Source: Haliotis rubra (lineage: Eukaryota). Taken from it: a DNA stretch of 64,000 nt. Below the pieces are notes generated by a model that was not told the origin of the DNA, made no database searches, and saw only the letters and a list, made by a program, of their open reading frames with translations. The DNA lies in the NCBI RefSeq assembly GCF_003918875.1, contig NW_025767587.1:186001-250000 (forward strand), written 5' to 3'. Below are positions 16,180 to 62,357 of the stretch, piece by piece. Position numbers and translations under genes: made by a program. Position 1 is the stretch's first letter, and each line of letters opens with the position of its first letter.

Positions 16180-19100
16180 ATGAAGGTCCTCATAGCTCTT
16201 GGACTTGTCGCCTTTGTATATGTAAGTCCACTAGAAGGTATATCTAGTCACCTTTGCATGTGTAAGTCCATCAGAAAGTATATCTAGTCGACTTTGCTTA
16301 TATGAGTCCTTCAGAATGTAGTTCTAGTGAAGATGGCTTGTGTAAGTCCATCAGAAAGTATATATTGTCGACTTTGCTTATATGAGCCCATCAGGATTTA
16401 AGTCTAGTGGAGATGGCTTGTGTAAGTCCAACAGAATGTATATCTAGTTGACTTTGCTGGTGTGAATCCATCAGAATGTAATTCTTGAGGAAATGGCATG
16501 TGTAAGTCCATCGGGAAGAATATCTAGTCGAATTTTCTTATAAAAATCCATCAGAATGTAACTCTAGTGGAGATGGCTTGTGTAAGCCCATCAACCTGTA
16601 TATCTAGTCGACATGGCATATTTAAGTTCATGATATGATTGAAAGCACTTCTCAAAATTCTTTATATATGAATGAATAGTGCTTTTTAACGGTTTTGCGT
16701 CATCCTGTTAAACCACTGCGACGTTCATAATTAAGTAAAGTATACAATGAACCCAAGAAGCATGAAATATGCAAATATAGGTGAATCTTTGTGTTTGACA
16801 CACTTTCTGCTATAGATCAAGGGCCAGTGGCCATTAGCGTTGGGTTCTAATCCCCAATAATGTTAATTGGTTATTCAGTACTATATATACTCTTTAAAAA
16901 AGTAGGAAAAATTCTTTTTTTAATTTACAATTGAAAATATTGAGAGATATATCGGAGTAAATCAATGTTGATATGATAATAATGAATGTTGCGAGAGTGC
17001 ATCACCACTTGCACTTCCTTATGACCATAGTTGTTTGTACAGTAATCGCTCTTAAAAGATGATTGGTGTATGACGTGAAATTTGCATGTGTACGAGTTTC
17101 ATTCTCAAACCAAAAACCGGGCTAGAAACAAACACAAACAACTGTGTGATGCAAGAGGATTGTCAAAATTAATGGTCTACAGTGATTTTTCGATTTTCTT
17201 GAAAACCGTCAAAATCAAGATGACCCCCAACCCCCACCCTTTCCAAGCACGTGTGTGTGTCTACTGCGTTGTGCTCGTGCATCCAATGCATTGTGTTAGG
17301 GAAGGTGATACAGAGAAATGGTGGTGCGTTCATAAGATGTCTGTCCTTTACATTTTTGTTAACGCTTATACTTCCTATCCAAATTGAAAGTTCAGGTTCA
17401 CTTAGTTTTTTTGAAGAGTATACTAGTGGGTCTTGCATTACCCCCTGCTATCTTGCCATCTTCATTTTCCTGTGATGTTGCTAACTGCAGCGTTGACATA
17501 TCCCATAAACGTCAAAGACCTTTATTACTTCGTACGTTCACATGAAACCGGCACCAGGAGATGTAAATGAACTGTCATCCACCGATTGATGTATGAAACT
17601 ACTGACTGTTTCTGTTGAAATAATCTGGTTATATGCATGTACCCTCGATATATACGACTAACGGATAGGGTGGTCAGGCTCGCTCACTTAGCCAACGCAT
17701 GTCATCGTGTCCCAACTGTCGATGCTCATGATGTCGATCCCTGGGTGTCAACAAACGAGCGTCATATAGCGGCAATACATTCGTGACCCACTCGTGTTAT
17801 TCCGGGACAAGCCGAATAGAGGTTACGAAAGGGGCGAGTGGTGACGAATGAGCTGCAATATTGCTGAGTGCGGCGTTAGACAAACAAATTATTTAATCCA
17901 ATATGTTTAGGACATGTAGTGGACTGAATATTGAACGAGTGGCCTAGGGGTGTGGCATGTTAGTCTTGCAAGGATACTCGCTTTATGGTTCGACTCCCGG
18001 GTTGGTAGATTCAGACTGCCGCAGTTGTGAGGGTATCGGTATCCCAGTACCTCAGGTACTCAGTATCCGGTATCTCTGGTACATAATTACAAGCGCCGAA
18101 TGTACACACTTTCCGACTTGGCTGATATCCCAATAAATCGTTTTGCGGAGCTGCGTCTCTTTGTAGGTAAGAAACCTCTGATACTGGGTTAACAACCCTG
18201 ATTTCATGGATTATACTTCTGGGATTGTCAGCATCATACCCGTGACCACTTTCTGCATCACTTCCGTCTTTCATCCTTCATTAAACGGACACGCCGTTGC
18301 GGCGTAAAACACAACACACTCACTTCATTTTGCGCCAGGATCCGCGGATAGATTGTAGCATCATACCCCTGATGGTGGAATTTACCTGAGTCTATACACT
18401 GCATGTCATCTGCTGTGTATGTTTCAGGGTCAGTTCCCCAATTTTGGAGACATCTTTAACTTTGGAACCCGAGATAGCATCCACGGGTATTCCTTCGAAT
18501 ACCACCGGAATGACGTAAGTATGATCTGGCAATTAGATTATGGAAGTGTTACTGAGGTTCCTTAATTATTCGTTCCACTTTCGCTTTAACTCTGCTATAT
18601 ATTTTTTAATATTGAAAGATACGAATCTAAATACTAAGAAGGTTTTTGACTTGTATAAATACTCAAACCCCTTCCATATTCATAACAAACGGTCGAAAGA
18701 AGAGTCTTTGAACGATTCCTATTATGTAATGAACATGTTTTTAGGAATCAGTATCAAATGGTTATTACAGCTTGTGTTCGCGAAACGATTGTGTATCACC
18801 TGCCATACATGTAAGAAAACTTAAAAAAAGCATGTGAATATAATGTTAAAAGTAAAAAAGCATTTTCATGAAATCGAATCAAAAATATGTTTCCAAATTC
18901 TCTGAATTATGCATATATTTGAATGGAAATTATGTGCCTTACAAACACTGTGTCACTGATTCGGCCAGTGGAACAGCTCAAGCTCTGATATCATTCAAAT
19001 GAGACGAGCAATGGAGATGGACAATTATTAGTCATTTTCAAAGCTGTAGGTTCCCCTGATTTCCATTGGCCCACGTTTCTCATCTCGCGTGAATTTACGT

Positions 19101-19960
19101 GAAAGAGCGAGACCTTGGGAAGGCGACCGCACGCATGACAATGGTATTTTATGTGTCAGGAACTGATTCTTGTACGAAACGTCTCTGCCTGCTTCGTCGT
19201 GAACGCTACAAAGGAGATCGAAAGCAAGATGCAACACAGAGACACTAGGGAACAGCTAGAGGTTCGTCAAAACGTTTTCTTTTTATTTCAAATCTTGGCC
19301 TTATTTTATAGGACATTGTACAAATGCGGGTTAGAATTGGTCTTCAGCCAACCATGCTTGTCGTAAGAGGCGACTAACGGAAACGGGTGGTCAGGCTCGC
19401 TGACTTGGTTGACGCATGTCACCATATCCCAGTTGCGTAGATCGATGCTTATGATGCCGATCACTGGATTGTCTGGTCCAGACTCGATATGGCAGAGATC
19501 GCTGTCCTAAAGCTGTAATATTGCTGATTGCGGCGTTGAACATCAAACAAACATAGTCAATGAACGTTAAAGCGTTTGCTCGTCACGCCGAAGACCCGGG
19601 TTCGATTCCCTACATAGGTACAATGTGTGAAGCCCATTTCTGGGGTCCCCCGCCGTAATATTGCTGGAATATTGCTAAAGCGGCTTAAACTCCTGGAATA
19701 TTGCTAAAGCGGCTTAAAACCATCTCACTCACTCACTCTTCTCACCTACCTCACTGAATTTCATATTCAACTTTCATGTGAACATTTGTTTTTGGTTTTT
19801 TTTGTCACACCAGGATGAGTTGTACGCCCAAATAAAAGCACACACCGGTGAGACCGTCAGCAGCATCAGCGACCTCCGCACTAACTACCACGACAACTAC
19901 GCCGTGATTGAGTGCTTCAGACACAGCGTGTACGAACTCCAGTATATTCCCAGCTCTTAG
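16180..19960 (+). CDS. BL1: secreted BRICHOS-like small protein, 125 aa
   Basis: Exons: 16180-16221 MKVLIALGLVAFVY; 18428-18514 GQFPNFGDIFNFGTRDSIHGYSFEYHRND; 19160-19261 ELILVRNVSACFVVNATKEIESKMQHRDTREQLE; 19814-19960 DELYAQIKAHTGETVSSISDLRTNYHDNYAVIECFRHSVYELQYIPSS*. All GT-AG, phase 0. AATAAA at ~19977. Confidence 0.88.
16207..16630. repeat. 40-bp minisatellite starting at the BL1 exon 1 donor
   Basis: Units like TGTAAGTCCATCAGAAAGTATATCTAGTCGACTTTGCTTA, ~10 copies. Confidence 0.9.
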
Positions 19961-21357: not shown

Positions 21358-21560
21358 CAGTGAAACCTGACTAAACCGGATCTCTGTCAATACCCGACCG
21401 CATTTAATATATACTAATAAGACGTTATTGTACACATGCTTTCAGTCTCGTCTGTCCATTTCAATACCAAAGGATGTAGTTTTGTATCTATTCCGAACTG
21501 CTCTTCAAAACGGACTTATGTTGCGGTCCCATGAATGTCCGGTTTAAACAGATTCTGCTG
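21358..21560. mobile_element. pogo/Tigger-like MITE
   Basis: TA-CAGTGAAACCTG..TAAACCGGA / TCCGGTTTAAACAGATTCTGCTG-TA imperfect TIRs. Confidence 0.6.
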
Positions 21561-21689
21561 TACATGTCCCCGGGATACAATGACACGTTATTGGTCAAGA
21601 CGATGATACGTATCGTAAAGGGCAATACAGCTGTGACCATTATAAGAATTGACTACTGAAAATCAGTAAGACAACGAAAAAGGAAAGTT

Positions 21690-21928
21690 CAGGGGTGGAA
21701 ATAACTATAAAATTGATAGTGTACTCCGGTACAGTGGCAAATGTAAAGTCACTTGCCCTGATAATTTTTCCACTATACCGACCGTTTTCTTCTTGATTTT
21801 TTAAATAAACAACATAATTAACATTGGAGAGTCAACTGGACACCGGTACAGTGTGATATTCAAATTTGCTTGCCCGACAGAAAAAACACTGGACTCGGAC
21901 ATCGGGCAATGGGTTATTTCCACCCCTG
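21690..21928. mobile_element. MITE with CAGGGGTGGAAATAAC TIRs (hAT-like ends)
   Basis: 16-bp perfect inverted termini; AAGTT on both flanks. Confidence 0.7.
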
Positions 21929-22108
21929 AAGTTGTGCCCTGCCTTTAGCACCCGCCAGTGTTCATACAAGTTGCATGATAAAGTAATTTTCGACTGACAC
22001 CCTTTAAATGCAATGCCCACGTCGAGTCGCACAGTTAAAAGACACCAAAGACTATTAATTTTGTACTGAAAAGCCATTGTTTAATTATTAATGCACTAAG
22101 GTAAAGAT

Positions 22109-25100
22109 TCACGATGAACTGTACTGTATCTTGAAAACATCATGGTTAAAACATTCAGCTACCGCTCTGATGTCGTGGTAGTCACTGCGGAGGTCGGTTA
22201 AACTCGCCACAGTCTCGCCCAGCTCAGCCTGTATCTGACCATACAGAACGTTCTGAAAGAAGGAGTGAGTGAGTTTAGTTTTACGCCGTTTTTAGCAATA
22301 TTCCAGCAATATCACGGCGGGGCTTCACGCATTGTACCCATGTGGGGAATCGAACCCTGGTCTTCGCCGTAAAGAGCGAACGCTTTAACCACTAGACTAC
22401 CCCTCGTTCTGAGAGAACAACGCAGAACGTTAGCAGAGAAATTGTACCAAGTAATAACCAAGAGGATATTCGGTTAGCTTCACAGTGTTTGAATTGTAAA
22501 CTACCGCTAAAAACACAGAACGCTTTTGTTTGATGTTGGTTGAATGTCGAAAAGAAGACATTTTAGTCAGGTTTGGTGTAGTTAAGAATAGTGTCATGGG
22601 CAATATGACAATGACAACCCGACTGGCGTGCACGTGACGTCTCAAGGAACACGGGGATAACGGTTTCACAGTGCATTATGAGAGAGTGACTGTGGTCCTC
22701 TGCCGCTTTCAGCAACAGCAGCAATACCACAGCTGGGGGCACAGACAAGGGATTCCAACATTGTACCCCTGTGGGGAACCGAACCCGGGGCTTCGGCGTG
22801 ACGAGCGAACGCTTTTACCACCGCCCCACATTGCACTGTAATAAGGTGGGTTGAGGCGATATGGTCAGCTGAGTTGACCATTACGAGCCACCTTGGGCTC
22901 CAATATTTGTTTGATGAAAACGGACAATTGCGTCAAATGACACGACTTCCCATCCGCAAATCCACTAATGCAACCAAAACCTCACTCAATCGTTCCCCAA
23001 CTCACTCACTCAACCACCCAACCAATCATCAGCTCACTCACTCAGCCGCTCGTTCATCGGTCACTCACTCACTCACTTACTCACTCAAAGACAGTTTACC
23101 TCCAATCCCTCCCTACTTCCTCTGTTCTTCATCTTCTCCGTCAGGTCTTCATCAGTTTCAACGATGAAACAGGCTGTGGCGTTCCTCACCAGTACGAGGT
23201 CCTAGGTCAAATTCAGAATATCTCATAATATCTCGCATTATATCTCACAATATCTCAATACTGTGTCTTATACATACATGCACCTCTGGCGCTTAATTAA
23301 ACATTTGAAGCCAAGGGTACACTCAAGCAACGTAGCATTATATTTTAAAAACCGATACTGCAAAGTGCTCTTTATCTTTTGTTGTTGTAAGGAAATTCCT
23401 CTTAGAATCAATATGGAATCAAATCTATTCGGTAGTTACATCTACAGTAATAACTAAGGGATTTGTTGCCATTTTAATTTTGGAATCAAATTCTACCAAA
23501 TCGGTTGATTAACGACCTGACCAATCTATATGAAACAACAACGTCATAATTACTGATAATCATGCTACACCTCAGATCATTCTAGACAAATTGTGAAATT
23601 CGTTATCATATTGACACAAATATTATACGGATTGAACATTCGAGACACAATACACAAAATAAAATAGATAACATTCATTTCATCCGATCCAGTTCCTGCA
23701 AAATTGGGTTCCTGTTTTACATTCACCCCTGCCAGCTTTAAAGAGAACCACCGATAGGGCGGTAGCATTCGTAATACCATGAAAGTATGACGTATGTCAA
23801 AATTATGTCTGTGGGGAACGAGTTTCTTTACAGTATTTATGGAAATGTTCACTGATACTCACCGCTGAACGATGATATTCGAAAGTGTACCCGCTGATTT
23901 TACCGGTTCCAAAGTCGAAGACTCCTAACCCAAACTGGGCCTGAAATACACATAGAAAACAGACTGAGTGAGTTAAACGCTTTTGTACCTATATTTCAGT
24001 TGTATTCGCACTTAAAATGTGTATGAATGCAGACTTGATCTCGTCACGATATGGCTGGAATGATACCGATGTGACGTAAAACCCAACTCAACTCAACTGT
24101 ATCGACACAGGCTAGGTTAATAATGAAAGTTATACCACTAGGGTATGTTATGTCCATTGTTCCGGCAGGTTGATTTTCTGTGTATCAACCTTCTATCTAC
24201 ACGTGCAGAGGTTGATATGTGGATAACAACCTTGGCGGTGCAGGAAACACACGTGCAACAAGCAATGTACGAGTCCATTCGGCGCCCTCGTGGTATAAGT
24301 AGGTTAGCACCCCCCCTCTGCTGGTGATATGGATTCAACGCTCTCGCCTGACGGCTCGAGCGTTGAAATCCATATCACCCTTGAGGAGGGTGCTAACGTA
24401 TACGCAAACCAGAGTGATCTCCGATCGCGACAAGCGAGCGAGTGAGGATTACGCCGCCTTTTCAGCACTGTTCCAGAACATCACGGCGGGGGATACCAGA
24501 AATAGGATTTACATATTCTACCCAAGTGGGGAATCGAACCCGGAAGACGGTTGATCGATTACCCACTACCGCTAGGCTACCTGACCGCCCGGGATTGGTG
24601 CGACCTACCAAGGATATAGTAAAACAAGAGTGAGTGAGTGAGTTTAGTTTTACACCGCACTCAGCAATATCCCAGCTATGTGGCGGCGGTCTGTAAATAA
24701 TCGAGTCTGGACAAGACAATCCAGTGATCAACAGCATGAGCATCGATCTGCGCAATTGGGAACCGATGGCATGTGTCAATCAAGTCAGCGAAACTGACCA
24801 CCCGATCCCGTTAGTCGCTTCTTACGACAAGCATAGTCGCCTTTTATGGCAAGCACATGGGTTGCTGAAGACCTATTCTACCCCGGATCTTCACGGGTCC
24901 GGTATCTCATCTTGGTCTAGACGCTGTATATTTGTGATCTTTTTGCACGGAAACCTGCGTCTCCTTAGGGACCAGTTCAAAGGTTCAAAATTGGACAAAA
25001 GAGAGACAAGGAGTGAGTCAATATGGTTTTACGCCGCTTTTAGCAATATTCCAGCAATATCACGGCGGGGGCAGAAATGGGCTTCACACATTGTGTTCAT

Positions 25101-26223
25101 GTGGTGAATCAAACCCGGGTCTTTGGAGTAACGAACAAACGCTTTAAACACCTGGCAATCTCACTGCCCCGAAGGCTAAAGGAAACACAAAACAAAAGCT
25201 AAAGAAAACCTCTGAAAATGCTTAATTCTTTGGAATGCTAAACACATGAAAAATGACAGACATGTTTTAGTACCGTGCCATATGTTTAAATTTAACAGAA
25301 ACATTATTCTGGAATGTTCAGATAAGACGCGACAAATGAGTGTTGAAAAGTTCAGGGTTTTGGATGTTAACATTTCATGAGTGTTTCAACGGCTGAGAGA
25401 AATCTAATTTCAACTCGCCTTCATAGCGATAGGATTAGTGACATAGGTGGGCGTTTTTCGTATTACAGATACATTACAAAACACTGAAAAATAAGTTTAG
25501 TTGACTTTGTCAGATGGAAACCTTGCAGGGTCATTAATCCCTCTCCCTCCCCTTATCATACCCCGCCCCTATCGCCTCCCCCACCCCTTTTCTCAATTGA
25601 CATTTGTGGATAAGTATAGTCTCCGACAGGAGCATCGTAATAAATACAACCGATAATGAAACAATATAATAAATTGAACATTTATAAAGTGCCTGTATGC
25701 ATGCTCGAATAGCTAAGACATTATTACCCCGGTTAACCCAAGCAGCCTGTGCGATGCTAGAAGGTTAACAGTCACATGACTTATCCCACCGGGTACCCAT
25801 TCACTGCAGGGACAATAGAGGCAATTTTGAACTTGCCTACCGCATATGTTAATTGCGCTTCGTTGTGGAGCAGGACAGAAGTCCTAGAAACTCTCAGGAG
25901 TCAAGCTGCAAAACGCGGTCAGCCATTCAAGAACTCCCCCGTGACCAGCGTTAACTTCAACTGATTTGTGGCATGGGTTCTATGAAGAAGCCCACACACC
26001 ACCACAAACCTCCACAACCACCGGTTTGTATATTACGTTCATATTCATCAAATAATATGGTACCTATGATTTATGAAAATCAGATAAAGTGTTTCATTAA
26101 CTCAAAGAACGCCGGTAGATTTCAAGACATATGTAAAAAATGTAACATTTTTATGACTATAATGAGAAATAATTAACTCACATATGCCACAATGGACAGG
26201 GTGAATAATATCAACAGCCACAT
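22109..26223 (-). CDS. BL2: secreted BRICHOS-like small protein, 121 aa
   Basis: Exons: 26223-26182 MWLLILFTLSIVAY; 23940-23863 AQFGLGVFDFGTGKISGYTFEYHRSA; 23201-23100 DLVLVRNATACFIVETDEDLTEKMKNRGSREGLE; 22252-22109 NVLYGQIQAELGETVASLTDLRSDYHDIRAVAECFNHDVFKIQYSSS*. All GT-AG, phase 0. Absent from the ORF track. Confidence 0.85.
22262..22404 (-). mobile_element. SINE family 1 copy at the BL2 exon 4 acceptor
   Basis: TSD CGTTCTGA[A/G]AGAA at 22249-22261 and 22405-22417. Confidence 0.85.
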
Positions 26224-28434: not shown

Positions 28435-29852
28435 TACTGAGTCAAGAAAGAAACTTCAATAATGAATAATTTTTCTCTGATGATACATCTATGTATCCGA
28501 AATGGGATCCCTATCTTTCGACTCTAGAAAAACGTTAGCAAAACCCACTCAAACCCATCCATTTGTCGTGCAAATGACGTTAGCGCCAAATCAGGTTTTG
28601 CACGTGCAGTCGATCACGTCGATCTTCGCATCGAAGTTTTCTTCATATGCACGTGTTTGCATTGGCCTCAAGAATTGAAAAAAACACTTTTAAACCACAG
28701 TTCAAACGGTACTTGAAATGCCACGATTGTCAAATGTGCAACGTGAACGTGCCGTTGGCATGTTGCAAGCTGGAAGATCAGTTATTGACGTCGCAAGAGC
28801 AATGGGATGCGGCCGTCGTACTGTGTATGACTTGCGAGGTCGTCTACAACAAACTGGCACCACTTCTGATAGCCCAAGGTCGGGTCGTCCACGTGTGACG
28901 TCACGAGCGGAAGACCGTCAAATCGTGCTACGTCACCTACGTGACAGATTTCTGCCGGTTACACGAACCAGGGCTGAGATGTTTAGAGGTCGACTGTCCT
29001 CACAGACCATTCGAAATCGGTTGCGGGCTGCCAATCTCCATTCTCGACGTCCATGTCGTGGGCCAATATTGACGCCGTTTCATCAACGTAAACGTCTGCT
29101 GTGGGCCCAACGTCACCTCCGATGGACCCAGAGAGACTGGAATCGAGTTGTCTTTAGCGATGAATCCAGGTTTACCCTCAGATTCGCGGACGGCAGGCAT
29201 AGAGCCTGTAGACGACGTCGTGAACGGTATGCCCAATGTTGTGTACAGGAAGTCGACAGATTCGGGGGCGGAAGTTGCATGGTGTGGGGTGCTTTCTGTG
29301 GGAACAACCGTTCCCGACTTCTGGTCATCCGTGGAAACCTCACAGCTGCTGCTTACCGCGACCAGGTGCTCACCCCTGAACTGATTGCGGCTCATGGTGT
29401 CTAAAGTTCCAGCATGATAATGCTGGCCGCATACCGCGATGTTGACACGAAATTTTCTTCAAAACGCTGGAATCAACGTCATGGACTGGCCATCGAGGTC
29501 CCCTGATATTGAACTGAGAAACTTCGCAACCTTTAATTCTTGTGACTTGACATTCTGCAGAATCCCCAACCACGTGTTCACAAGCATCAGGCAGTCGATG
29601 AGGAGACGGCTGTGGTGAATGAGTAGCCTAATGATATTGAACTGATTATTTTTATTCTTGGCTTGACATTCTGTATACCCATGTTTTGGAACGGCTGTGT
29701 ACCCTAATCGAAATGATTATGGCACTGTCAGTGTATCGAGTACATCACACAGATCTCAGCAATGAAATAATAACAATTTAACCATCTTACCATCTCTTGT
29801 TCTTTTACAGTGCCCTGAAGACAGAATGTGAAGTTTCTTTTTTGACTCAGTA
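28435..29852 (+). mobile_element. Tc1/mariner DNA transposon, defective
   Basis: TIRs TACTGAGTCAAGAAAGAAACTTCA / TGAAGTTTCTTTTTTGACTCAGTA enclose a transposase ORF. Confidence 0.9.
28718..29510 (+). pseudogene. Tc1-like transposase, truncated
   Basis: HTH start MPRLSNVQRERAVGML, GRPR and VFSDESRF motifs; stop at 29404, then out-of-frame FQHDNA and WPSRSPD; C-terminus missing. Confidence 0.88.
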
Positions 29853-32205: not shown

Positions 32206-32356
32206 TTAGGAGCTGGGGGTCAGGTCGTAGACGGAGTGCCTGAAGCACTCGGCGACGGCGCGGATGTCGTGGTATTCGGTGCGGAGCTCGCTGAGGCTGC
32301 TCTTGCTCTCGCCAGTGTGGGCTTTGATCTGCTGGTAGATATCGTCCTGGAAAAAG

Positions 32357-32394
<38 letters not shown>

Positions 32395-34529
32395 CCACCG
32401 CCTACTTGAATATCATCGATCAAAATTATCATCAGCTTGACTATCTTGTCAAAAACATTCCTCATTTAGTTACTCCCTGAAAACGTAATAGGTTAGATTT
32501 CACCACAACCTTAATTCGTCATCTTAGAATGATCCTAAAATTCTAAAGATCTTTCAAAAAGATCTTTATGTCATTCGATCGTCTTACTACCTTGTTAAAT
32601 CTTCTTTGGCACTTAATCGAAATTGATTAAATCCGTGAATCCCGGCTCGATTCCCCATATGATTACAATATGTGAAGCCTATTTCTGAGTATTTTGAATA
32701 TTGCTAAAACGGTGTAAAATCTAACCCACTTACGTTTTATGCTGAATACATACCTCGTATTTGTCCCTGCTGTCCATGCTATCCAGGAGCTTCTCGATGT
32801 CGTCGTCAACATGTATCAGATAACAGGCGTTAGAAGTACTCACCAGGAGCAGATCCTGACAGAAACAGACCTCTTGGTACAATTTCAGAACGTCTTCATC
32901 ATACCGAATTAATATACAACAAGAAAACACCTAAGTCGGATTCACCTGTGAATATCTGTGTTAGAATTGGTCTTCAGCAACTGATGCTTGTCGTAGAAGG
33001 CGACTGAAGGGATCTGGTGGTCAGGCTCGCTGACCTGGTTGACACATGTCATCGTATCCCAATTGCATAGATGCTCATGATGCTCAATTATTTACCAACC
33101 GCCGTCTGAACTATTGCTCAGTGAGGCGTTACACAAAAAGACCCCAAAGGCTTAAGCAATCAAGCGGGAGTCCTTCTTTGCATTCTAAACAGCCATCCTA
33201 AACGGAGCTCGCTCTTAGGAACGGAGCCATGGGTGACACAGCAGAACAAAAAAGGGCAGTTAACTTTCCAAATACGAAGTTCAGCTGCCAGCTTCGAAAA
33301 TCTAGGCGCCAGGTTAGAATATGGTCTTCAGCAACCCATGCTTGTAAGAGGCGACTGACAGGATCTCCGACTTGGTTGACACATGTCATCGTACTCAGGT
33401 GGTGGTGGTGGAATTGGGTTTAACGTCGTGCTTGAGAATATTTCGCTGATATGACGACGTGCATGCGTTTGTGTGTGTGTGTGCGGCTGCTTGTACTAGC
33501 CCAGACTTAAGCTGGTTTTATAGTGCTAGCCCACTGGGATACCATGCCGCAGTGAAACATGAATACCCCACTCAGACACATTATACTGACTCCGAGCCAA
33601 CCAGTCCTTGTTGTACCCATTAATGCCGAGCGCCAGGCAGGGACCAAGTACTCAGGATGGGAATATTGCTGAATGTGGCGTTAACAACACCCGAATGATT
33701 CTGACTGTAACAGGATATACATTAAACGTTGTGAAGCAGTCGCGGGCCCTCACGGTTTACTTCTCTGAGGTTCACCGGGATATCTAATGAAAGCAACACT
33801 TCAGGTTCCCAATGACTTATGATATCTGGGTCATTCCATACCCAGATGAGGTATTGTCTCGTACTTACATGGGTCTTGTGGTACTCAAAGTCTATGCCAT
33901 GAATTCTGTCACTGTTCCAGCCAAGAATGTTATCCACTGGTATGAACTGGGCCTGGAAGAGTGAGTGAGTGGATATGATTGACCTTCTGTGTTTCATTCA
34001 TGTCAACTGTTGCCATTACAACGTAGGAATGAATGTAGTGTTTTGTTTTAAAATCTATGTTGCAACAACGAATCCAAATATTTTTAAACTCCTCTCCTTT
34101 CTTCAAAAAAGAAGAAAAAGGATGTCAAATGATCAGCTTTTCTACAATTGAGGTATGCTGCATTTGTACAATGTCTCATCTTAAGCGACAGAGCGAGTAC
34201 TACTTTTTGTCGGCTTGTCGAAGAGAAATATTTCACTTATAAATGAACAAGTGGACGTCCAGGTCCTGGTCAGTGACGTCACACACTCACAGCAGCAAGG
34301 GCACAGAGCCCCAGGATGATATAAAAAATCAAAAATCTTTATTTCTGATACTATGAGGCCACGGGCCTATGGTACAAAACACCTCATCGAGACTTGAAAT
34401 AAAATGTTAAAATGAAAGCATGTATAATATATACAATCTTAATATGACAAAATTGATTTCCTTTTTCCGACGCATAAAACAGATATTTAGCAGTATTCAA
34501 GGAAATGTCAGGATGATATAAACCCTCAT
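32206..34529 (-). pseudogene. BL3: BRICHOS-like paralogue disrupted in exon 1
   Basis: Exon 1 (MRVYIIL/GLCALAA; 34529-34509 and 34325-34291) is split by an insertion, giving MRVYIILTFP*. Exons 33952-33869 (AQFIPVDNILGWNSDRIHGIDFEYHKTH), 32855-32754 (DLLLVSTSNACYLIHVDDDIEKLLDSMDSRDKYE) and 32346-32206 (DDIYQQIKAHTGESKSSLSELRTEYHDIRAVAECFRHSVYDLTPSS*) are intact. Confidence 0.82.
34326..34508 (-). mobile_element. 5'-truncated non-LTR retroelement 3' end with 14-bp TSD
   Basis: CAGGATGATATAAA is duplicated at 34312-34325 and 34509-34522. The minus strand ends AATAAA-GATTTTTGATTT. The insert is absent from paralogue BL4. Confidence 0.8.
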
Positions 34530-36495: not shown

Positions 36496-36745
36496 TTTGT
36501 TGTTTGTTAAGTTTGTTTGTTTGACCTATATGTTGTTGTTGTTTGTTAAGTTTGTTTGTTTGACCTATATGTTGTTGTTGTTTGTTAAGTTTGTTTGTTT
36601 GACCTATATGTTGTTGTTGTTTGTTAAGTTTGTTTGTTTGACCTATATGTTGTTGTTGTTTGTTAAGTTTGTTTGTTTGACCTATATGTTGTTGTTGTTT
36701 GTTTAGTTTGTTTGTTTGACCTATATGTTATTGTTGTTGTTGTTG
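36496..36745. repeat. 39-bp GT-rich minisatellite
   Basis: ~6 units, directly visible. Confidence 0.9.
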
Positions 36746-36896: not shown

Positions 36897-38206
36897 NNNN
36901 NNNNNNNNNNNNNNNNNNNNNNNNNNNNNNNNNNNNNNNNNNNNNNNNNNNNNNNNNNNNNNNNNNNNNNNNNNNNNNNNNNNNNNNNNNNNNNNNNNNN
37001 NNNNNNNNNNNNNNNNNNNNNNNNNNNNNNNNNNNNCTGCTTCATATTAGCTGCGATAAAGATCGGTTAATGATGTAATAAGAACTCACAATTATGAATT
37101 ACCAAATGGTACACTGCCTTGGAAACCAGCGTAAGTTGATGCAGTAGACATTTGTTTTTGGTGAATAAGACCAGTTATACAGCCAGGTTTTCACTTATTT
37201 CATGGGAAAGTTAGTTCTTCAATGCTGTTGATTGAAACATACTCATATGAAACCTTTCCTTGCTCATACTCCAACTGTACACACTCATTAGATTATATAA
37301 GAAAAGGTTCCAAATATAACATCCATGGACATAAACGTTTTGGAGAGTTTTGTTGTTTTTTCAGGTGTTAACATTATCTTGGCCGTCAAGAGGTTCACAA
37401 AAGGTATATTCATGACATGGTGAACTGAACATAAGGTGTCATCTTGCTAAGCCATCGCTTTCCGCATAAAGCCACTTCGTGTCACTTTAAAGTGACCGCA
37501 CACCTTGCAGTACAGATCTTCAGATTGAGCTATTTGTTGGGAATCTATAAAAGCAGAAATGAGATTCATTGCCAAAATCGTTCACCCAAACAATCAATAT
37601 GGACGACCGATAGAAATCAGCTTTAATGTGTCAACCAACTGGACAAGAAGAAAACCTCTGTGGCACCACTTAGGAGCTGGAGCTGGAGCTGGGGGTCAGG
37701 TCGTAGACGGAGTGCCTGAAGCACTCGGCGACGGAGCGGATGTCGTGGTATTTGGTGCGGAGCTCGCTGAGGCTGCTCTTGCTCTCGCCAGTGTGGGCTT
37801 GGATCTGCTGGTAGATCTGGTNNNNNNNNNNNNNNNNNNNNNNNNNNNNNNNNNNNNNNNNNNNNNNNNNNNNNNNNNNNNNNNNNNNNNNNNNNNNNNN
37901 NNNNNNNNNNNNNNNNNNNNNNNNNNNNNNNNNNNNNNNNNNNNNNNNNNNNNNNNNNNNNNNNNNNNNNNNNNNNNNNNNNNNNNNNNNNNNNNNNNNN
38001 NNNNNNNNNNNNNNNNNNNNNNNNNNNNNNNNNNNNNNNNNNNNNNNNNNNNNNNNNNNNNNNNNNNNNNNNNNNNNNNNNNNNNNNNNNNNNNNNNNNN
38101 NNNNNNNNNNNNNNNNNNNNNNNNNNNNNNNNNNNNNNNNNNNNNNNNNNNNNNNNNNNNNNNNNNNNNNNNNNNNNNNNNNNNNNNNNNNNNNNNNNNN
38201 NNNNNN
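36897..38206. other. Two assembly gaps (36897-37036, 37822-38206)
   Basis: N runs. Confidence 1.
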
Positions 38207-40516
38207 ATCAAAATTATCATCAACTTGACTATCTCGTCAAAAACATTCCTTATTTAGTTATTCTCTGGAAACATAAACTTTCATTTCACCACAACCTTAA
38301 TTCGTCATCTTACAATGATCCTTTCAGAAAGATCTAATCGAAATTGATTAATCACGTGAATCCCGGGTTTGATTCCCAATATGATTACAACATGTGAAGC
38401 CTATTCCTACTTGAGCATTGCTAAAACGGTGTAAAATCTAACCTTCTTACGTTTTGCATTTAATACATACCTCGTATTTTTCCCTGCTGTCCTTGCTATC
38501 CAGGAGCTTCTCGATGTCGTTGTCAACATGTATCAGATAACAGGCGTTAGAACTCCTCACCAGGAGCAGATCCTGACAGAAACAGACCTCTTGGTACAAT
38601 TTCAGAACGTCTTCATCATACCGACTTAACATACAACAAGAAAACACTCAAGCCGGATTAACCCGTGAACATCAGGGTTAGAATTGGTATTCAACAACAC
38701 AAAAGGCTACTAACAGGATCGGGTGGTCAGGCTCGCTGACTTGGTTGACACATGTCATCGTATCCCAATTGCATAGATCGATGATCATGATGTTGATCAC
38801 TGGATTGTGTGGTCCAGACTCGATTATTTACAGACCACCGCCATATAGCTGGACTATTGCTGAGTGCGGCGTTAAGCAAAACACAAAGGCTTAAGCAATC
38901 AAGTCAGGTTCTTTCTTAGCATCCTAAACAGTCAAGACTCAAAAAGCTCGCTCTTATTAACAGAGCCATGGGGGTGGTGGGGTAGCCTAGTGGTTAAAGC
39001 GTTGGCTCGTCACGCCGAAGACCCGGGTTCGATTCCCCACATGGGCACAATGTGTTAAGCCCATTTCTGGTGCCCCCGCCGTGATATTGCTGGAATATTG
39101 CTAAAAGCGGCGTAAAACTAAACTCAGTCAGTCAGTATTAACAGAGCCATGAGTGACAAGGGAGAACAAGGGAGCAATTGAATTCCCAAAAAGTAAACCC
39201 TAAAAATTTCAGCTGCAAATTGTAACATTTGAAAGAAAAACTAGAAGAGACTATCCATGGTCCGTTCAAGTACTACTATACAGTTTTGACCTTTTAGAGG
39301 AATTCCATAAATTTCGTATCTACATTTTTCTTTCTTTGCATCCTTAACAGCCATCCTAAACAGAGCTCGTTCTTAGGAACAGAGCCATGAGTGACACAGA
39401 AGAACAAAAAGGGCAGTTAACTTTCCAAATACGAATCCCTAAAACGTTCAGTTGCCAATAGTAACATTTAAAAGAAACACCAGTTGAAACTATTCATGGT
39501 CCGTTCAAGTACTGCAATACAGTTTTGACCTTTTACAGCAAATTCCATACATTTCGTATCTACATTTTTCAAATTTTTAATCCAGATCTTTGTCATATCC
39601 TTTAAAGCGAAACCTAGAATAAATGTTCCCAGTTTGAAACTACTACCGCTAAGGTCGAGGAAGCTGTTTTCTGATTGATATCGACTTCCTGCCAAAGTTG
39701 GCTAAAGCTCATTCTGACTATGCCCCTGAAGACCCGGGTTAGAATTGGCCTTAAGCAACCCATGCTTGTCAGAGTCGACTTACAGGATCGCTGACTTGGT
39801 TGACACCTGTCATCGTATTCAGAATTAAACAACACCCAAATCATTCTGACTGTAACAGGATGTACAAAAAGCGTTGTGTGGCAGTCGCGAGCACTCACAG
39901 TTTACTTTTCTGAGGTTCACCGGGATGTCTAATGAAATCAACACCCGAATGAGGTATTGTCTCGTACTTACATGGGTCTTGTGGAACTCAAAGCTCCAGC
40001 CATGAATTCTGTCACTGTTCCAGCCAAGGATGTTGTTGATGATGTCCACTGGTTTGAACTGGGCCTGGAAGAGTAAGTGAGTTGGGATTAACCCTCTTCA
40101 TTCATGTCAACTGTTGCCATCACAACTGTTGCCATCACAACTGTTGCCATCACAACTGTTGCCATCACAGCTGTTGCCATCGCAACTGTTGCCATCACAA
40201 CTGTTGCCATCACAACTGTTGCCATCACCAAGTCTATACTGCAACAAAGAATTAAAACAATTTTAAACTCCTCTCCTTTCTACCCCGCCACAAAAAGAAA
40301 AAGAAAAAGGATGTCACATGATCAGCTTATCTCCACTTGAAGTATCCTTGTACAATGTCTCATCTTAAGCGACAGAGCGAGTACTACTTTTTGTCGGCTT
40401 GTCGAAGAGCAATATTTTACTTATAAATTAACAAATGGACACCCAGTTCCTGGTCAATGACGTCACACACTCACAGCAGCAAGGGCGCAGAGCCCCAGGA
40501 TGATATAAACCTGCAT
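37670..40516 (-). CDS. BL4: secreted BRICHOS-like small protein, ~129 aa
   Basis: Exons: 40516-40475 MQVYIILGLCALAA; 40064-39972 AQFKPVDIINNILGWNSDRIHGWSFEFHKTH; 38572-38471 DLLLVRSSNACYLIHVDNDIEKLLDSKDSREKYE; ~37822-37670 [D]QIYQQIQAHTGESKSSLSELRTKYHDIRSVAECFRHSVYDLTPSSSSSS*. The exon 4 acceptor lies in the N-gap. Confidence 0.82.
38971..39135 (+). mobile_element. SINE family 1 copy in BL4 intron 2
   Basis: Flanked by TSD TATTAACAGAGCCATG; not present in BL3 intron 2. Confidence 0.9.
40108..40228. repeat. 15-bp minisatellite CAACTGTTGCCATCA in BL4 intron 1
   Basis: 8 units; only one unit at the equivalent BL3 position (~34004). Confidence 0.95.
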
Positions 40517-44479: not shown

Positions 44480-47400
44480 ATGAAGGCTCTCCTTGTTTTT
44501 ACTGCCTTGGGATTTGTCCTGGTAAGCTAACAAATTGGCAGTAGTATGATCGATGTAATCGATGTTTATGTCACACCATACACCGTGTGGGACGCCAGGT
44601 GTACTTTGTCCCACAGATGGCAAGATGAATCTGGTTCATTCTTGTCTTCCGTGCGAGCCAGTACACCTGGTCCACCATATTGTGTCTCGGAAGGTCGCCA
44701 AAGCGTTAGTTAGGGTTGTCAAGATTCCGTGAATATTCGAATTTTGTTTGGTCAGCTGGATTAACCCAAACGGAAATTTTGTATATAGAGAACCTCGATA
44801 ATCTGGACTCTATTGCGTAGTGATTAAATTTGTGAATGTATTAAGGGGACCTGTGAATATCCGGGCCAGAACTGGTTTTCAGAAACCCAAGTTGGTCTTA
44901 ACATGCAATTATAGAGCGGATTGGGTGGTCAAGCTTTCTCACGTTGTTGATGCCTGTCCCGCTCGCATAGATCGTGCTCATAATGTCAATCACTGGGTCG
45001 TTTGGTGCAGACGACATTATCTACAGTCCACCATTGGGGAATATGTCTATGCGATTATGTATCATACATTTCAGAGGAATGAGCACACAGAATACAGTAT
45101 ACATGGTATTCAAAGTCTTTTGTCCTCTTCAATAATCTGGAATATCCTAATGGTTAAAGCTTTCGCTCCTTGCGGGAAGACCCGAGCATAATTCCACACA
45201 TGTATATAATGTGTGGAGCCTACGGCTGGTGTCGGGGGGTGGGGTAGCCTAGCTGTTTAAGCGCTCGCTCTTCACCCCGAAGGCCCAGGTTCGATTTCCG
45301 TATGGCGTCAGTGTATCAAGCTAATTTATAGAATTTCCACCGTGATTTTGCAGGAATATTGCTAATAGCGGTATTAAACCATACTCACTCACTCACTCCC
45401 AGACGCCTCCGTGGTGTAGTGGTTAGAGCGTCCGCCCGGAGAGCGGAAGGTCGCGGGTTCGATCCCCGACCGCGTCATGCCAAAAGACGTTAAAATATGG
45501 TACTTGTTGGTCCCTGCCTGGCGCTCGGCATTAATTTGGAACAAAAAGGACTGGTCGGCTCGAAGTCAGTATAATGTGTCTAAGTGGGGTATTCATGCTT
45601 CACTGCATGGTATCTCAGTGGGCTAGCACTATAAAACCCAGCTTCAGTCTGGGTTAGTACAAGCAGCCGCACATACACATACACACGCATGCACGTCGTC
45701 ATATGAGCGAAATATTCTCAAGCACGACGTTAAACCCAATTTCACCTCACCTCCCTCCCACTCACTCACTCACTCTGGTTGCCACGTGCACGTCGTAATA
45801 ATGCTGGACAATTGCCAAAAGAGGCGAAAAATCATACTCAGTCACGAATAAATGGCCGGGAATAGACAATGTCGTCTAAAATGGCGGTTACATCTTTACA
45901 CGAGATATCTCTTGTTTGATGAAAGTTTGTCTCATCGTATAAATATATTCCTGTTCCTATTTCAGGGAGATATCGGACAGATCGTGTACTACCACCCCGA
46001 GCTCGTCCACGGCTACTCAATGGAGTATCACAGCTACGCCGTATTTAGCTTCTCGTATTTCCTACCACGAATAAATAATTACTTGCTGATGTTCAAATGA
46101 AGTGAAACTCAGTACGTCTCAGTTAGACTCAGTTGATCCGGAAAAAAACTTAATGGACATGGAGGCTTATTATATACACGAAATACCCATGATTCTTAAA
46201 TAATATATTTGAACACTCTCACCAGGACCTGTACCGTATCTGGATTGAAAATTGAATTATCACTCAAATCGTGTTGCCTTAAGAAGTATAAGAGATTAAG
46301 TGATATCTCCTTGTTGATGATCCTACGATGAAATTTATAAATGTTTTTTCAGGCGATTGTGACATCATTGTTGACTTCACAATTGTTTTTTTAATAACAA
46401 ATATATAGCAAGGATCGTTGATAAAGGTTTAATACTCCGCGGCTAGAGTTAATGTCAGTAAACACTCACAGAGTTTTTCTAATTTTTCACTTTTTTGTAT
46501 TCATCACCAGCATGGAAAGGCACTGAACACAAATCAGACATTAAATGGCATTGTAATATTTCTGTACAACCAGCTGATTCATATAACAATAATGAATGTA
46601 TATTTCAGGACATCATTGTGGTGAGGAACGCTACTACTTGCTACATCGTCGACGTCACCGCCGCCATCGAGACCGACCTGAGGCACAGCACAACGAGGAG
46701 AACGATAGAGGTGAGGTATAAATTGAAAATAACGACATCGAGCGATAATCATTATATCATTATGATAGATGGACTCGTCCCTCTAAACACTAATGTTACA
46801 AACACATACAGCCTGTCTCAAACAACTGAAAACTCGATTAATGTAACTTTTCTCGACAAACATCCACTTCGAATGTAGATGACTTGAGTTTCTGGGTTCG
46901 AATTCCGGTTCGCCTCAATTTGGATTTTTTGGTCGGTAGGCACAATACTCGTTTTCGTGGCGTTTACCAATATGCTAACCGTCTTATAGCCGCCTTATTT
47001 TGGCTTTCCTTACACATTACGTTGGCACGACGTTAAATAGCTGGAGTAGTGATTCATTCGGCTTTAAACTTACTAAATACAACCTCGTGTTGTAAGCTGA
47101 TGCCTTGCAGAGTTACTTCCCTGATGCTTTGCAGAGATACTTCCCTTAGCTCAGACATTCACACAAAGCGTGGATTCAACCCAGGTCGGAATATGTAATC
47201 TGACAAGCCATCATGATACACGTGGATATACGCCCCGGCCAGTGTTACCTGGAACTTTATTCTCTTCTCACGCACTCCCTCACTCCCTCACTCATTCCAC
47301 TCACTCACTCCGTTCAATGTTTACTTCCTTCCAATCACACACTCACTCACTCCTTCTCTCCACTCACTCACCCACCCACACACTCACTCACTCACCCAAC

Positions 47401-47747
47401 CACTCACTCACCCGACCCCCTACTCAATCACTCACCCGACCCCCTACTCAATCACTCACCCGACCCCCCACTCACTCACCCGACCCCCCACTCACTCACT
47501 CAACACTGTAAAATGCAAAGAAATTGTAAAAAACCCACCCCACCCCCTTTGTATTGGGTAAATACACGGGGTGTTTGAATGTTTCCAGGAGGAAATCTAC
47601 AACCAGATGGTGAGTCACAAGGGGGAAGTGGTGTCCTCCATCGACAAGATCCGCCAGCAGCTTCAGGACATCCGTGCTATAGTCGAGTGTTTCAACCACA
47701 ACGTCTACCAGATCAAGTACATGCACTCAACATCGAAATCAATTTAA
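44480..47747 (+). CDS. BL5: secreted BRICHOS-like small protein, 125 aa
   Basis: Exons: 44480-44521 MKALLVFTALGFVL; 45966-46040 GDIGQIVYYHPELVHGYSMEYHSYA; 46609-46710 DIIVVRNATTCYIVDVTAAIETDLRHSTTRRTIE; 47589-47747 EEIYNQMVSHKGEVVSSIDKIRQQLQDIRAIVECFNHNVYQIKYMHSTSKSI*. AATAAA overlaps the stop codon. Confidence 0.87.
45403..45757 (+). mobile_element. tRNA-derived SINE family 3 (Meta/MESC-like core)
   Basis: tRNA head, GTCATRCCAAAAGACGTTAAAATATGGTACTTG core, (CACCT)n tail. Confidence 0.85.
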
Positions 47748-59900: not shown

Positions 59901-60288
59901 ATCAAGTACCAATGGCATTTAAACATTTACGAATACAATAAATACAACACTTAACTTTAAAACATAGAAGTAAAAATGTGAACTCAAAGAAATATTTTAT
60001 TTGAAACCTATGAAATAATCATTTAAACGCAGGATCTGGTATCCTGGTTACGGATGAAAAAAAATGTTTGGCTAATAGAATTAGTGTTTGTAAAAATGAA
60101 TAACGATGTATTTGTGGCCGGGCCGGCCACGACTTCACTTTCTAGTGCAGTTTTAATAAGTTTTTAAAACTTATCTATTTTGAGTATTCCATTGTCACGA
60201 TGTTATTCCACGAGACTTATCTTATCTAACATATAAAATACCTCTCGTCAGAGATGTGGTCTCTTGTACAGAACATATTTCTGAAAAC

Positions 60289-62357
60289 ATGAAGCTGGTG
60301 TTTGCTCTTCTGCTCGTTGGGATTGCTGTGGTAAGATTTCAGTTTTAAAACAGACATATTGATTAAAACATCACAAGCAGAATTTTATCCCTTAGGTAAA
60401 TAAGGATCTGCTTATGTGTATGCGAGGACCAGTTTCGAGCGTTGTATGGTCCTTGGTTTGCGAGAACACTGCGCATGTTCGTGGTTTTACCAAAGCTCTA
60501 AGCGTATAACTGTAAATAATAACGCTTATGTAACGTTAGAGGTCAACTCGCTCACCACTTAAAGAGGTGATGTGCGGTGCTTAAAAAATGGTAATACCGA
60601 ATACTGCTAATGTGGCGCTGAAACATTTTGTGTACATAATAATTTATTATGTTGATGTTTATAGGCTCAGTATCCAAATAACTACCGCCCTGATCGAATC
60701 CACGGCTACACGTTTGATTACCACTCCTATGCTGTAAGTATAATTCAACTTAAAGGTGTTCCACACATTATTGTATTTCATGACTGGTTTCGTGAGTAAG
60801 TTGCTCTTGCGTTTGACTTGAAAACCATATTTTTCTCTGAAACCGTTATACTGCTGCAGGGTTTTATAGCACCGACTTGTTGGTGACTATGAAAATAGAT
60901 CCAACTGACGAGCTTCCTCTTTATACTTCCAGCCTTCTGGTTCTCGATCTTTCTAATAGACCCGTGAAGATCCGGGCTAGAATATTGATCTTCAGTAACC
61001 CATGCTCGTCGTAAGAGGCGACTAACGGGATCGGGTGGTCAGGATCGCTGACTTGGTTGACACATGTCATCAGTTCCCAATTGCGCAGATCGATGCTCAT
61101 GCTGTTGATCTCTGGATTGTCTGGTCCAGACTCGATTATTTAAAGACCGCCGCCATATAGCTGGAATATTGCTGAGTGCGGCGTAAAACTAAACTCACTC
61201 ACTCTTTCTAATATGTCGCTGCATCACTCTGGGACTCTTTTCTGATAAGGCTTACAACAGTTCTTACTCTAACATCCACCATGTCTTAAAGACAACCCTC
61301 TTTGAACGTTACAAGTGACTATTCAGTCCACTATTTCCCTTTGTTTGCAAACAAGTCACATGTGCCATATATTGATCTCATGTATGTGTCTTGGGCATAT
61401 CTGTTTTGGGGTAGCCCAGTGGTTAAAGAGTTCGCTTGTCTCAACAAAGACCCGGGTTCGATTCCCCTCGTGAATACAAGATTGATATGACTGGTGTCCC
61501 CTGCCATAATATTGCTGGAATATTGATACAAGCGGCGTAAAACAGTTATCAACGAAAGGTATTCCAAGATCAGGGTGACGTTGAATAAGAATATGGAAAT
61601 GCTAAAAAATATGGTAACATGTCCCGTTAATGATGGAGAATGTACGGCGCTATATATTGCTCATGTTTGTTCAGAAAATTGCAACAAAACAAATCGCACA
61701 TACTCGGCTATAAGGAAGTATGAGGCCTTTGGTAAACATCTTCACGAACTAAGTCAATATAGGGGACATAATCTTGAATATCTTTTACACGAACCATGGC
61801 AGGGTTGTCCAAAAACAGGCGAAAATATGGTACATTGATGTTGCCCTTCCTGGCACGTCATTAATGTTATAGTCGGAGCCAGGGTACATGATCTGGTCTC
61901 AGGATCAATGGTAACCTGTGGCATGCTGCCTCAGTACACCTTAGCCTAGTGGTTAAAGCATTGGCTCGTCACGCCGAGTACCAGGGTTCGATTCCCCAAC
62001 ATGGGTGCAATGTGTGAAGCCCATTACTGGTATCCCCAGCCGTGATATTGCTGGAATATTGCTGGGATATTGCTGGAATATTGCTAAAAGTGGCGTAAGA
62101 CCATACTCACTCACTCAGTTGGCGAGCACTGTAAAACCGACAACAGTTGAACACAAACTGACGCAGACACACACACCGACAGAACAGACTAATACAAAAC
62201 TATAAAATCACACAGGGACACTGGCGCGCAGACACTTATCGCGTTGATTTACTTTCAGGATTTGCTGGTGGTCACCAACACCAGCACCTGCGTTCTGGTG
62301 TCCCTCCCTGGGAAGGATGACGAAATGAGGGACCTCCAAGAACGCTACAAGATTGAA
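60289..62357 (+). CDS. BL6: secreted BRICHOS-like small protein (exons 1-3; exon 4 beyond window)
   Basis: TATAAAA at 60232. Exons: 60289-60330 MKLVFALLLVGIAV; 60665-60733 AQYPNNYRPDRIHGYTFDYHSYA; 62259-62357 DLLVVTNTSTCVLVSLPGKDDEMRDLQERYKIE. All GT-AG, phase 0. Confidence 0.83.
60959..61202 (+). mobile_element. Headless retroposon family 2 (~245 bp), representative copy
   Basis: Starts GACCCGTGAAGATCCGGG; shares the GCTGGAATATTGCT..GCGGCGTAAAAC tail with family 1; TSD TCTTTCTAATA. Other copies: 2771-3020(-), 3101-3356(-), 10652-10866(-), 19326-19552, 24628-24898(-), 31137-31373(-), 38661-38880, 55697-55910. Confidence 0.88.

Follow-up and report, generated by a model that had tools for sequence, protein, structure and literature searches.

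The 64-kb window of Haliotis rubra DNA studied here (by window we mean the whole stretch that was analysed) carries a tandem cluster of six paralogous genes, named c1 to c6, which would encode secreted single-domain proteins of about 12 kDa with a BRICHOS-like fold. Judged from the sequences collected, the family to which they belong is gastropod-wide, and standard domain models probably miss this whole branch of the BRICHOS superfamily. Taken as a whole, the best explanation, namely a cluster of six paralogues with a BRICHOS-like fold whose products act as chaperones in trans, has in our judgement about an even chance of being right.

Six Paralogous Four-Exon Genes

Gene models were built from motif scans, tblastn searches with the c1 exons, and reading of the splice sites. 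This resulted in six collinear four-exon models in the order c1(+), c2(-), c3(-), c4(-), c5(+), and c6(+), where c5 lies head-to-head with c4. All readable internal exon boundaries are preceded by AG and followed by GT, i.e., the introns are canonical GT-AG introns, and splice-site reading places all of them in phase 0, as the original prediction had it. When a family hidden Markov model (HMM) was run on the six-frame stop-to-stop pieces of the window, exactly these exons were recovered, with per-exon E-values from 1e-16 to 1e-2; neither a seventh copy nor stray exons were detected by this model in the window, including the stretches at 48-60 kb and 1-16 kb. Motif scans, tblastn, splice sites, and the family HMM agree on six paralogous loci at the places where they had been predicted. 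An exon pattern shared by six genes cannot be chance, and we regard it as nearly certain that the gene models are correct.

Exon 1 comprises 42 bp and encodes 14 hydrophobic residues in c1, c2, c4, c5, and c6; a signal-peptide exon of this length, originally ascribed to all six genes, is borne out for these five and fails for c3, where a 184-bp insertion interrupts it. Exon 2 (69-93 bp) begins with a codon for A or G, usually followed by Q, and carries the motif (I/V)(H/S)G-x-x-(F/M)-(E/D)-(Y/F)-H. It had been thought to end with this HGYxFEYH-type motif; its true end lies three residues later. Exon 3, with (D/E)-(L/I)-x-(L/V)-V-x5-C, measures 102 bp in c1 to c5 and 99 bp in c6, in agreement with the range of 99-102 bp given before. 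In exon 4, Y-H-D...E-C-F-x-H-x-V-(Y/F) is followed by a short Ser-rich end; the predicted EC-F-x-H-x-V-Y/F motif is present in c1 to c5, and exon 4 of c6 lies beyond the window. An identical architecture of all six copies, as claimed at first, is not what the window contains: exon 1 of c3 is split, the start of c4 exon 4 falls into an assembly gap, and c6 lacks its last exon there. The products are predicted to be secreted two-Cys proteins of approximately 120-125 amino acids (aa). Paralogues are 35-50% identical, with the exception of c3 and c4, which share 84%. Four of the genes are apparently functional in the window, one is broken in exon 1, and one runs off the window.

The cluster had been described as hidden, without a complete open reading frame (ORF) for any of its genes. 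The latter holds true, introns being the sole reason, but c1 and c2 have already been called as genes. The spliced c1 protein is 100% identical to P0001, the RefSeq model of uncharacterized protein LOC124262815 of Haliotis rubra, and the public assembly GCA_003918875.1 has 125-aa and 121-aa genes over exactly the spans of c1 and c2. Thus, these genes are uncharacterised, not hidden. A TATA-like box at -54 and an AATAAA 20 nt past the coding end accompany c1. Orthologues of c1, c5, and c6 occur in H. cracherodii and H. rufescens with 77-83% identity (83% for the c5 orthologues P0003 and P0058, respectively), which indicates that the duplications predate those species.

Predicted BRICHOS-Like Fold

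Structure prediction with AlphaFold2 (AF2) on a 55-sequence alignment gave a model with a predicted local distance difference test score (pLDDT) of 92.4 and a predicted template modelling score (pTM) of 0.77. A mature-only model reached a pLDDT of 88.8 and a pTM of 0.80, its first 10 tail residues being disordered (pLDDT 44). Strands are predicted at residues 29-32, 35-40, 45-49, 53-58, 90-92, and 115-119, and helices at 61-67, 70-86, 95-102, and 105-111; that is, four consecutive strands are followed by two helices, a short strand, a helix, a short helix ending in Cys111, and a last strand. The BRICHOS topology has the same order of elements, including the extra 4' strand of members other than SP-C (PMC9714404). 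What distinguishes the fold is found in the models, where a run of four antiparallel strands leads into a variable helix and then a second, short one, and the fifth strand comes to lie beside strand 4.

A comparison of AlphaFold models by Foldseek had been suggested as a check of the original prediction, and it turned out in its favour. Against the PDB, 2yad ranked first with both the full-length and the mature model, and ranks 1-6 of the mature model are all six 2yad chains. Against Swiss-Prot, the top 19 matches, and 25 of the 30 best, are BRICHOS proteins; they cover all known subfamilies and include arenicins, GKN1/2, SP-C, BRICD5, ITM2B/C, and LECT1. By ESM features, c1 matched the GKN1 BRICHOS cluster with 0.89, and a Gigantopelta member that is only 24% identical to c1 matched it with 0.91; an ESMFold model of this divergent member reached template modelling (TM) scores of 0.67 against an SP-C cluster and 0.54 against an ITM2 cluster. 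Single scores are weak or middling, and the fold call is persuasive because the matches are exclusively BRICHOS: two AF2 models, two structure aligners, the ESM features, and an independent ESMFold model all point there and only there. On these models, a BRICHOS-like fold is very probable, and true homology to BRICHOS is likely.

Cysteine Pair and Position 40

The models place Cys54 on strand 4 and Cys111 at the end of the short helix before strand 5, and the conserved BRICHOS disulfide runs from strand 4 to the short helix before strand 5 (PMC9714404). In c1 the two Cys are 57 residues apart, as originally read, and they are the sole nearly invariant residues of the family (53 of 54 and 54 of 54 sequences, respectively). 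The structural match extends end to end, including the C-terminus, which in the alignment lies 8 residues past Cys111; Cys189 of proSP-C is equally spaced from the C-terminus of that protein. From their modelled positions we infer that Cys54 and Cys111 form a BRICHOS-type disulfide. As a separate feature of this region, an N-x-S/T sequon is located in the loop right before the first Cys in exon 3 of c1, c2, c5, and c6 (e.g., 19178-19186) as well as in many other family members; c3 and c4 have no such sequon ahead of this Cys.

At the end of strand 2, canonical BRICHOS domains carry Asp in 97% and Asn in 2.7% of cases, rarely Glu or Ser (PMC9627735). The original prediction held that His replaces this conserved Asp. 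Strand 2 ends with position 40, for which all six abalone genes encode His; across the family, the column of this position is strictly two-state, with 39 His and 14 Asp. In the 2yad alignment, the range anchors (25 with 90) place residue 105 of proSP-C near position 40. Judged from these anchors and the strand boundaries, His40 is the best candidate for the residue at the BRICHOS Asp position. To this extent the claim can be upheld; the placement does not come from a residue-level superposition, and a quarter of the family does have Asp. Glu38, which precedes position 40 by two residues in strand 2 and is expected to point to the same face, is an alternative candidate. Columns 40 and 104 covary: His40 is combined with Asp104 38 times, and Asp40 with Ser104 12 times. 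This suggests an interaction between the two residues and the retention of an ionisable group that titrates near neutrality.

Distribution and Conservation of the Family

The search profile combined c1 and its orthologue with exon fragments from the remaining copies; five fragment rows of its alignment contain a three-residue misplacement. Among 1.84 billion representative proteins it found 56 matches at E<=1e-3, mostly 115-160 aa long, with non-self E-values down to 1e-40. Members share a full-length profile match, a signal peptide, a Cys pair about 57 residues apart, and the motifs FEYH/YDD, CY-V, and YHD/YHS...EC. All named members are gastropods, from Haliotis, Gigantopelta, Batillaria, Babylonia, Littorina, and Pomacea, i.e., from Vetigastropoda, Neomphalina, and several caenogastropods. 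In c1 numbering, the conserved columns of the N-terminal half are Q16, D30, H33-G34-Y35, F37-E38-Y39-H/D40, L45-L47, C54-Y55-x-V57, and W63; those of the C-terminal half are I80-Y81, I84, G89-x-T91, Y102-H103-D/S104, A107, E110-C111, Y117, L119, Y121, and P123. When the family alignment was used for a word-indexed search for homologues, 7 gastropod proteins were the sole result, 0 of them carrying PF04089. A literature search with motif strings, LOC numbers, accession numbers, and depositor names found no paper that describes the family or links it to BRICHOS, the one match for the depositor names being an unrelated article.

The unnamed members stem from short contigs and marine metatranscriptome-type records. 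One 951-bp contig holds an uninterrupted, mRNA-like two-domain ORF, which suggests that relatives are transcribed. In L001:41-841 (JGI 3300032755), P0007, P0018, P0035, and P0045, a single intronless ORF of transcript-like character contains the domain two or three times in tandem, which parallels the multi-BRICHOS precursors of canonical BRICHOS families. The members P0031 and P0071 (MCI3325506.1 and MCI3732336.1) lie on contigs of 541-679 bp deposited as Escherichia coli hypothetical proteins and are almost certainly gastropod contamination of bacterial assemblies.

On the level of structure, the ESM Atlas contains three mollusc-only clusters of the same fold with 118, 96, and 62 members. 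The nearest fold clusters in the AFDB are small uncharacterised proteins, followed by BRICHOS, ITM2, and GKN2 entries; by their accession prefixes, the nearest ones presumably come from scallop and mussel.

Predicted Signal Peptide and Apparent Absence of a Cargo

The 14-residue hydrophobic stretch of exon 1 is followed by A or G at -1 and then by Gln in 38 of 49 sequences. By the -3/-1 rule, a signal peptide of 15 residues is strongly predicted, with cleavage behind the first residue that exon 2 encodes, so that Gln usually becomes N-terminal. In the models of the cluster products, a variable, disordered N-terminal tail of 8-16 residues precedes a single compact domain. Family-wide, the tails comprise 7 to 44 residues, are hypervariable in length and sequence, have no cleavage motif, and are mildly enriched in F/W/Y, Pro, Gly, and Asn relative to the core.

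At the other end, the stop codon follows 10-18 residues past the second Cys in c1 to c5, and the modelled protein ends right after strand 5. Neither a proprotein-convertase site nor a cargo peptide was found after this strand, nor is there a conserved dibasic site. This agrees with the earlier statement that the proteins stop after the second-Cys strand and carry no client. The accompanying rule, that BRICHOS clients are normally C-terminal, has an exception in proSP-C, whose client is N-terminal and whose chain also ends right after strand 5.

Proposed Function and Alternative Explanations

As stand-alone secreted modules, the proteins might bind to hydrophobic or beta-prone segments that other extracellular proteins expose, and act on those proteins in trans as ATP-independent holdases or anti-aggregation factors, and this activity may be pH-tuned through the His40/Asp104 pair. 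We put forward such a trans-chaperone mechanism tentatively, as a possibility short of a probability; the free anti-amyloid chaperone with pH or metal sensitivity that had been proposed for the cluster is purely inferential. The Littorina littorea members AAM48585.1 and AAM48584.1 were deposited as "anoxia-induced let-like" and "grl-like" proteins, respectively, and presumably originate from hepatopancreas cDNA screens of the Storey laboratory. A review of the screens of this laboratory does not name the two clones (PMC2699829). The depositor names are compatible with a role in stress or acidosis. Shelled molluscs become acidotic under anoxia, and, speculatively, a His/Asp switch would suit this condition. 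The most far-reaching version is that gastropods, perhaps molluscs, possess a large family of cargo-free stand-alone BRICHOS chaperones in which His40-Asp104 (in caenogastropods Asp40-Ser104) replaces the pH-sensing Asp and which, induced by anoxia or acidosis, keep extracellular proteins soluble; we consider it doubtful that all of this holds.

Several observations weigh against BRICHOS chaperones as the explanation. Membership in PF04089, which HMMER had been expected to reveal, did not materialise: hmmscan against Pfam gave no match to this family for P0001 and P0002 at E<=10 or for the 55 members at E<=1. Precomputed Pfam assignments are empty for all named members, whose public names read 'uncharacterized', not 'BRICHOS domain-containing', and profile searches against PDB sequences returned nothing relevant. 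Pfam matches other than BRICHOS were scattered and dismissed as chance (e.g., Tubulin_2 at E 0.069). Furthermore, Cys-Cys pairing, 40-104 contact, and Asp equivalence were derived from secondary-structure placement and range anchors only. The covariation of H/D versus D/S may reflect a single clade split and thus one evolutionary event, since the Asp40/Ser104 members of known source are caenogastropods. Finally, the N-terminal tail, enriched in aromatic residues, Pro, Gly, and Asn, could itself be a small cargo in cis.

The lack of a sequence-level signal in Pfam and the PDB, together with the absence of the BRICHOS Asp from most members, would be expected if the similarity were convergent, with a mollusc-specific two-Cys alpha/beta family unrelated to BRICHOS sharing a common strand-helix arrangement. 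However, BRICHOS proteins dominate the top of the Swiss-Prot matches and fill the first six PDB ranks of the mature model, the match includes the C-terminus 8 residues past the second Cys, the modelled Cys pair is on equivalent elements, a quarter of the family keeps Asp at the end of strand 2, and a divergent member contributes independent ESM evidence; convergence therefore appears improbable to us. Moreover, accepted BRICHOS subfamilies are themselves linked to each other only at HHpred E-values of 1e-4 to 0.015 (PMC9714404). Even less credible is that the short tail rich in aromatic residues, Pro, and Gly serves as a cargo in the manner of proSP-C, shielded by the domain until release. The idea draws on proSP-C as the best structural match, which has an N-terminal client and ends after strand 5 (PMC9714404), on the tail composition, and on an NFG-type motif in the c1 tail; yet tails of such different lengths share no conserved motif, no dibasic or other conserved cleavage site separates them from the domain, and in the model the tail, disordered over its first 10 residues, is not confidently packed on the domain as a whole. 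The BRICHOS resemblance could also be real and the function be something other than chaperoning. The proteins would then be, as is largely true of the gastrokines, lineage-specific secreted stress, immune, or mucosal factors built on the fold as a scaffold, and their specificity for ligands or targets would be driven by the diversification of tandem copies. Low identity among paralogues (35-50%), a ratio of non-synonymous to synonymous substitutions (dN/dS) of 1.68 between c3 and c4, hypervariable tails, the gastrokines as closest family by ESM features, and depositor names pointing to anoxia induction are all in line with this explanation, whereas the conservation of the core (Cys pair, FEYH, YHD, CY-V) across gastropod orders and the chaperone-type activity of every BRICHOS domain tested so far (PMC9627735, PMC9714404) are not; we rate it as rather unlikely. 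Trans-acting chaperones of BRICHOS-like fold are the reading that we prefer.

Incomplete Copies and Neighbouring Elements

Coordinates of the gene models and of the features that interrupt them are compiled in Table 1.

Table 1. Genes of the cluster, insertion, and assembly gaps (positions within the window).
Feature	Span	Strand	Exons and remarks
Gene c1, intact, 125 aa	16180-19960	+	16180-16221, 18428-18514, 19160-19261, 19814-19960 (with stop)
Gene c2, intact, 121 aa	22109-26223	-	26182-26223, 23863-23940, 23100-23201, 22109-22252 (with stop)
Gene c3, probable pseudogene	32206-34529	-	split exon 1 34509-34529 and 34291-34311; 33869-33952, 32754-32855, 32206-32346
Insertion breaking c3 exon 1	34312-34521	-	184 bp (34325-34508); 13-bp direct duplications 34509-34521 and 34312-34324
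Intergenic assembly gap between c4 3' end and c3 5' region	36897-37036		touches no exon
Gene c4	37670-40516	-	40475-40516, 39972-40064, 38471-38572, readable exon 4 37670-37821 (with stop)
Assembly gap inside c4, intron 3/exon 4 junction	37822-38206		flanks collinear with c3; left unfilled
Gene c5, intact, 125 aa	44480-47747	+	44480-44521, 45966-46040, 46609-46710, 47589-47747 (with stop)
Gene c6, exons 1-3 only	60289-62357	+	60289-60330, 60665-60733, 62259-62357; exon 4 beyond window

The copy c3 is probably a pseudogene. Its exon 1 is interrupted after 21 nt, and read-through leads to a stop after 10 codons; no alternative in-frame ATG was found for c3. The 13-bp duplication at the insertion is target-site-like, and the 184-bp insert has no second copy within the window. 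Exons 2-4 remain open, and the dN/dS against c4 derives from 19 differences (16.5 non-synonymous, 2.5 synonymous). This pattern fits a young pseudogene or an insertion allele.

In c4, the gap takes away the 3' end of intron 3 together with the acceptor and one or more bases at the start of exon 4, so that the opening codon of this exon reads ?AC and was treated as X; the rest is readable in the expected frame. The flanks of the gap align to c3 in the same order and strand at points only about 78 bp apart, and going by this sequence the length of the N-run is probably an overestimate. Given the flanks collinear with c3 and the in-frame exon 4, continuity of c4 is likely, in the sense of plausible, not provable. 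The intergenic gap is situated about 0.64 kb downstream of the c4 stop and about 2.4 kb upstream of the c3 ATG. A near-perfect 39-bp tandem repeat of 6 copies (36497-36738) lies about 160 bp below the latter gap, and a 15-bp repeat of 8 copies (40108-40228) lies in intron 1 of c4; these repeats may explain the assembly breaks.

Intron 3 of c6 is still open at the window end. In its orthologues P0004 and P0059 (119-120 aa), a canonical exon 4 follows about 2.4 kb downstream of exon 3 (spacing read in H. rufescens). Most of the readable intron 3 is filled by a C-rich 64-bp minisatellite of about 20 copies (62437-63748), which explains why the GC skew is strongly negative towards the end of the window. 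The last nucleotides, approximately 63968-64000, resemble a tRNA-derived element at its 5' end, with a GGGTAGCCTAGTGGTTAAAGCG-type box A region; the window end truncates it. H. rufescens has a further family gene with a 130-aa product after the c6 orthologue (L002:24906-26919); three short degenerate repeats stand ahead of the exon-3-like segment of this further gene. In H. rubra, the cluster probably extends past the window end.

A repeat is also associated with c1: a minisatellite with a 40-bp (80-bp) unit and about 10 copies (16207-16612) starts where the 3' end of exon 1 and the GTAAGT donor lie, and intron 1 therefore opens with a series of degenerate exon-intron junctions that could serve as decoy donors. 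Between c2 and c3, a 228-aa ORF at 28718-29404 (+) with helix-turn-helix domains of Tc3/mariner-type transposases (PF01498, E 2e-10) represents a transposon remnant. For a 948-aa ORF at 7501-10347 (-), part of which is made up of an 81-bp (27-aa) unit repeated ten times, Pfam yielded no match; the public assembly annotates a portion of this ORF as a 476-aa gene. As a candidate for a trans client of the cluster this ORF was rejected, there being neither a Pfam match nor evidence of a link.

Significance and Comparison with Known Systems

BRICHOS is the best-studied dedicated anti-amyloid chaperone domain, and isolated recombinant domains are in development against fibrils of Abeta42, IAPP, and others. 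To our knowledge, all BRICHOS families described so far have a cargo or extension of their own and a nearly invariant Asp that sets a pH-dependent switch. If our reading is true, the abalone proteins would be natural trans-acting BRICHOS domains like those engineered from human Bri2 and proSP-C as anti-amyloid agents, and minimal domains of about 95 residues, occurring in nature as a sizeable family, would provide counterparts to the domains secreted alone that the field has made artificially. With its covarying His/Asp or Asp/Ser pair, the family would constitute a natural experiment on the Asp switch, and possibly a handle on extracellular proteostasis in anoxia and acidosis of intertidal molluscs. 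This significance rests for now on fold-level evidence and database names.

Among known systems, the proSP-C BRICHOS domain (PDB 2YAD) is the best structural match by two aligners. In both, four antiparallel strands precede helices, a short helix, and strand 5; the disulfide by which proSP-C ties its short helix to strand 4 would have its counterpart in the predicted Cys54-Cys111 pair, and the proSP-C chain ends 8 residues past the second Cys, as does the aligned part of the abalone protein. In contrast, sequence similarity is undetectable (11-16% identity in structural alignments), and proSP-C is a type II membrane precursor with an N-terminal transmembrane client, whereas the abalone proteins have only a cleaved signal peptide. 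Asp105 of proSP-C is probably matched by His, and the modelled abalone proteins show an extra short strand (90-92) that resembles the 4' strand of other BRICHOS proteins.

The gastrokines (GKN1, GKN2, and GKN3) resemble the abalone proteins in being small, soluble, and secreted, with a signal peptide directly before the BRICHOS-type domain, and they are the nearest named clusters by ESM features (0.89-0.91). They differ by a length of about 180 aa, a C-terminal extension, a PF04089 match, and Asp or Asn at the key position; the mature abalone proteins comprise about 110 aa and end 10-18 residues past the second Cys. The BRICHOS precursors of antimicrobial peptides (arenicin, alvinellacin, nicomicin, and capitellacin) are likewise secreted and lophotrochozoan, and arenicin-1 is the top Foldseek match in Swiss-Prot. 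However, they contain a convertase site and, after the domain, a Cys-rich beta-hairpin or Trp/Cys cargo, both of which are missing from the abalone proteins. The Littorina proteins AAM48585.1 and AAM48584.1 are true family members (profile E-values of 1e-11 and 8e-10) with the same length, signal peptide, Cys pair, and motifs, but belong to the Asp40/Ser104 branch of caenogastropods and are only about 25% identical to c1.

The closest precedent is OAF (Out at first), which standard domain models likewise fail to place in the superfamily, its membership emerging from structure and from weak profile signals; it was recognised as BRICHOS only via AlphaFold comparison (PMC9714404). Unlike the abalone proteins, OAF keeps the Asp, a convertase site, and a disulfide-rich mature peptide of 70 residues. 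The abalone family is best called a client-less, Asp-less BRICHOS variant, a finding comparable to the recognition of OAF as a member.

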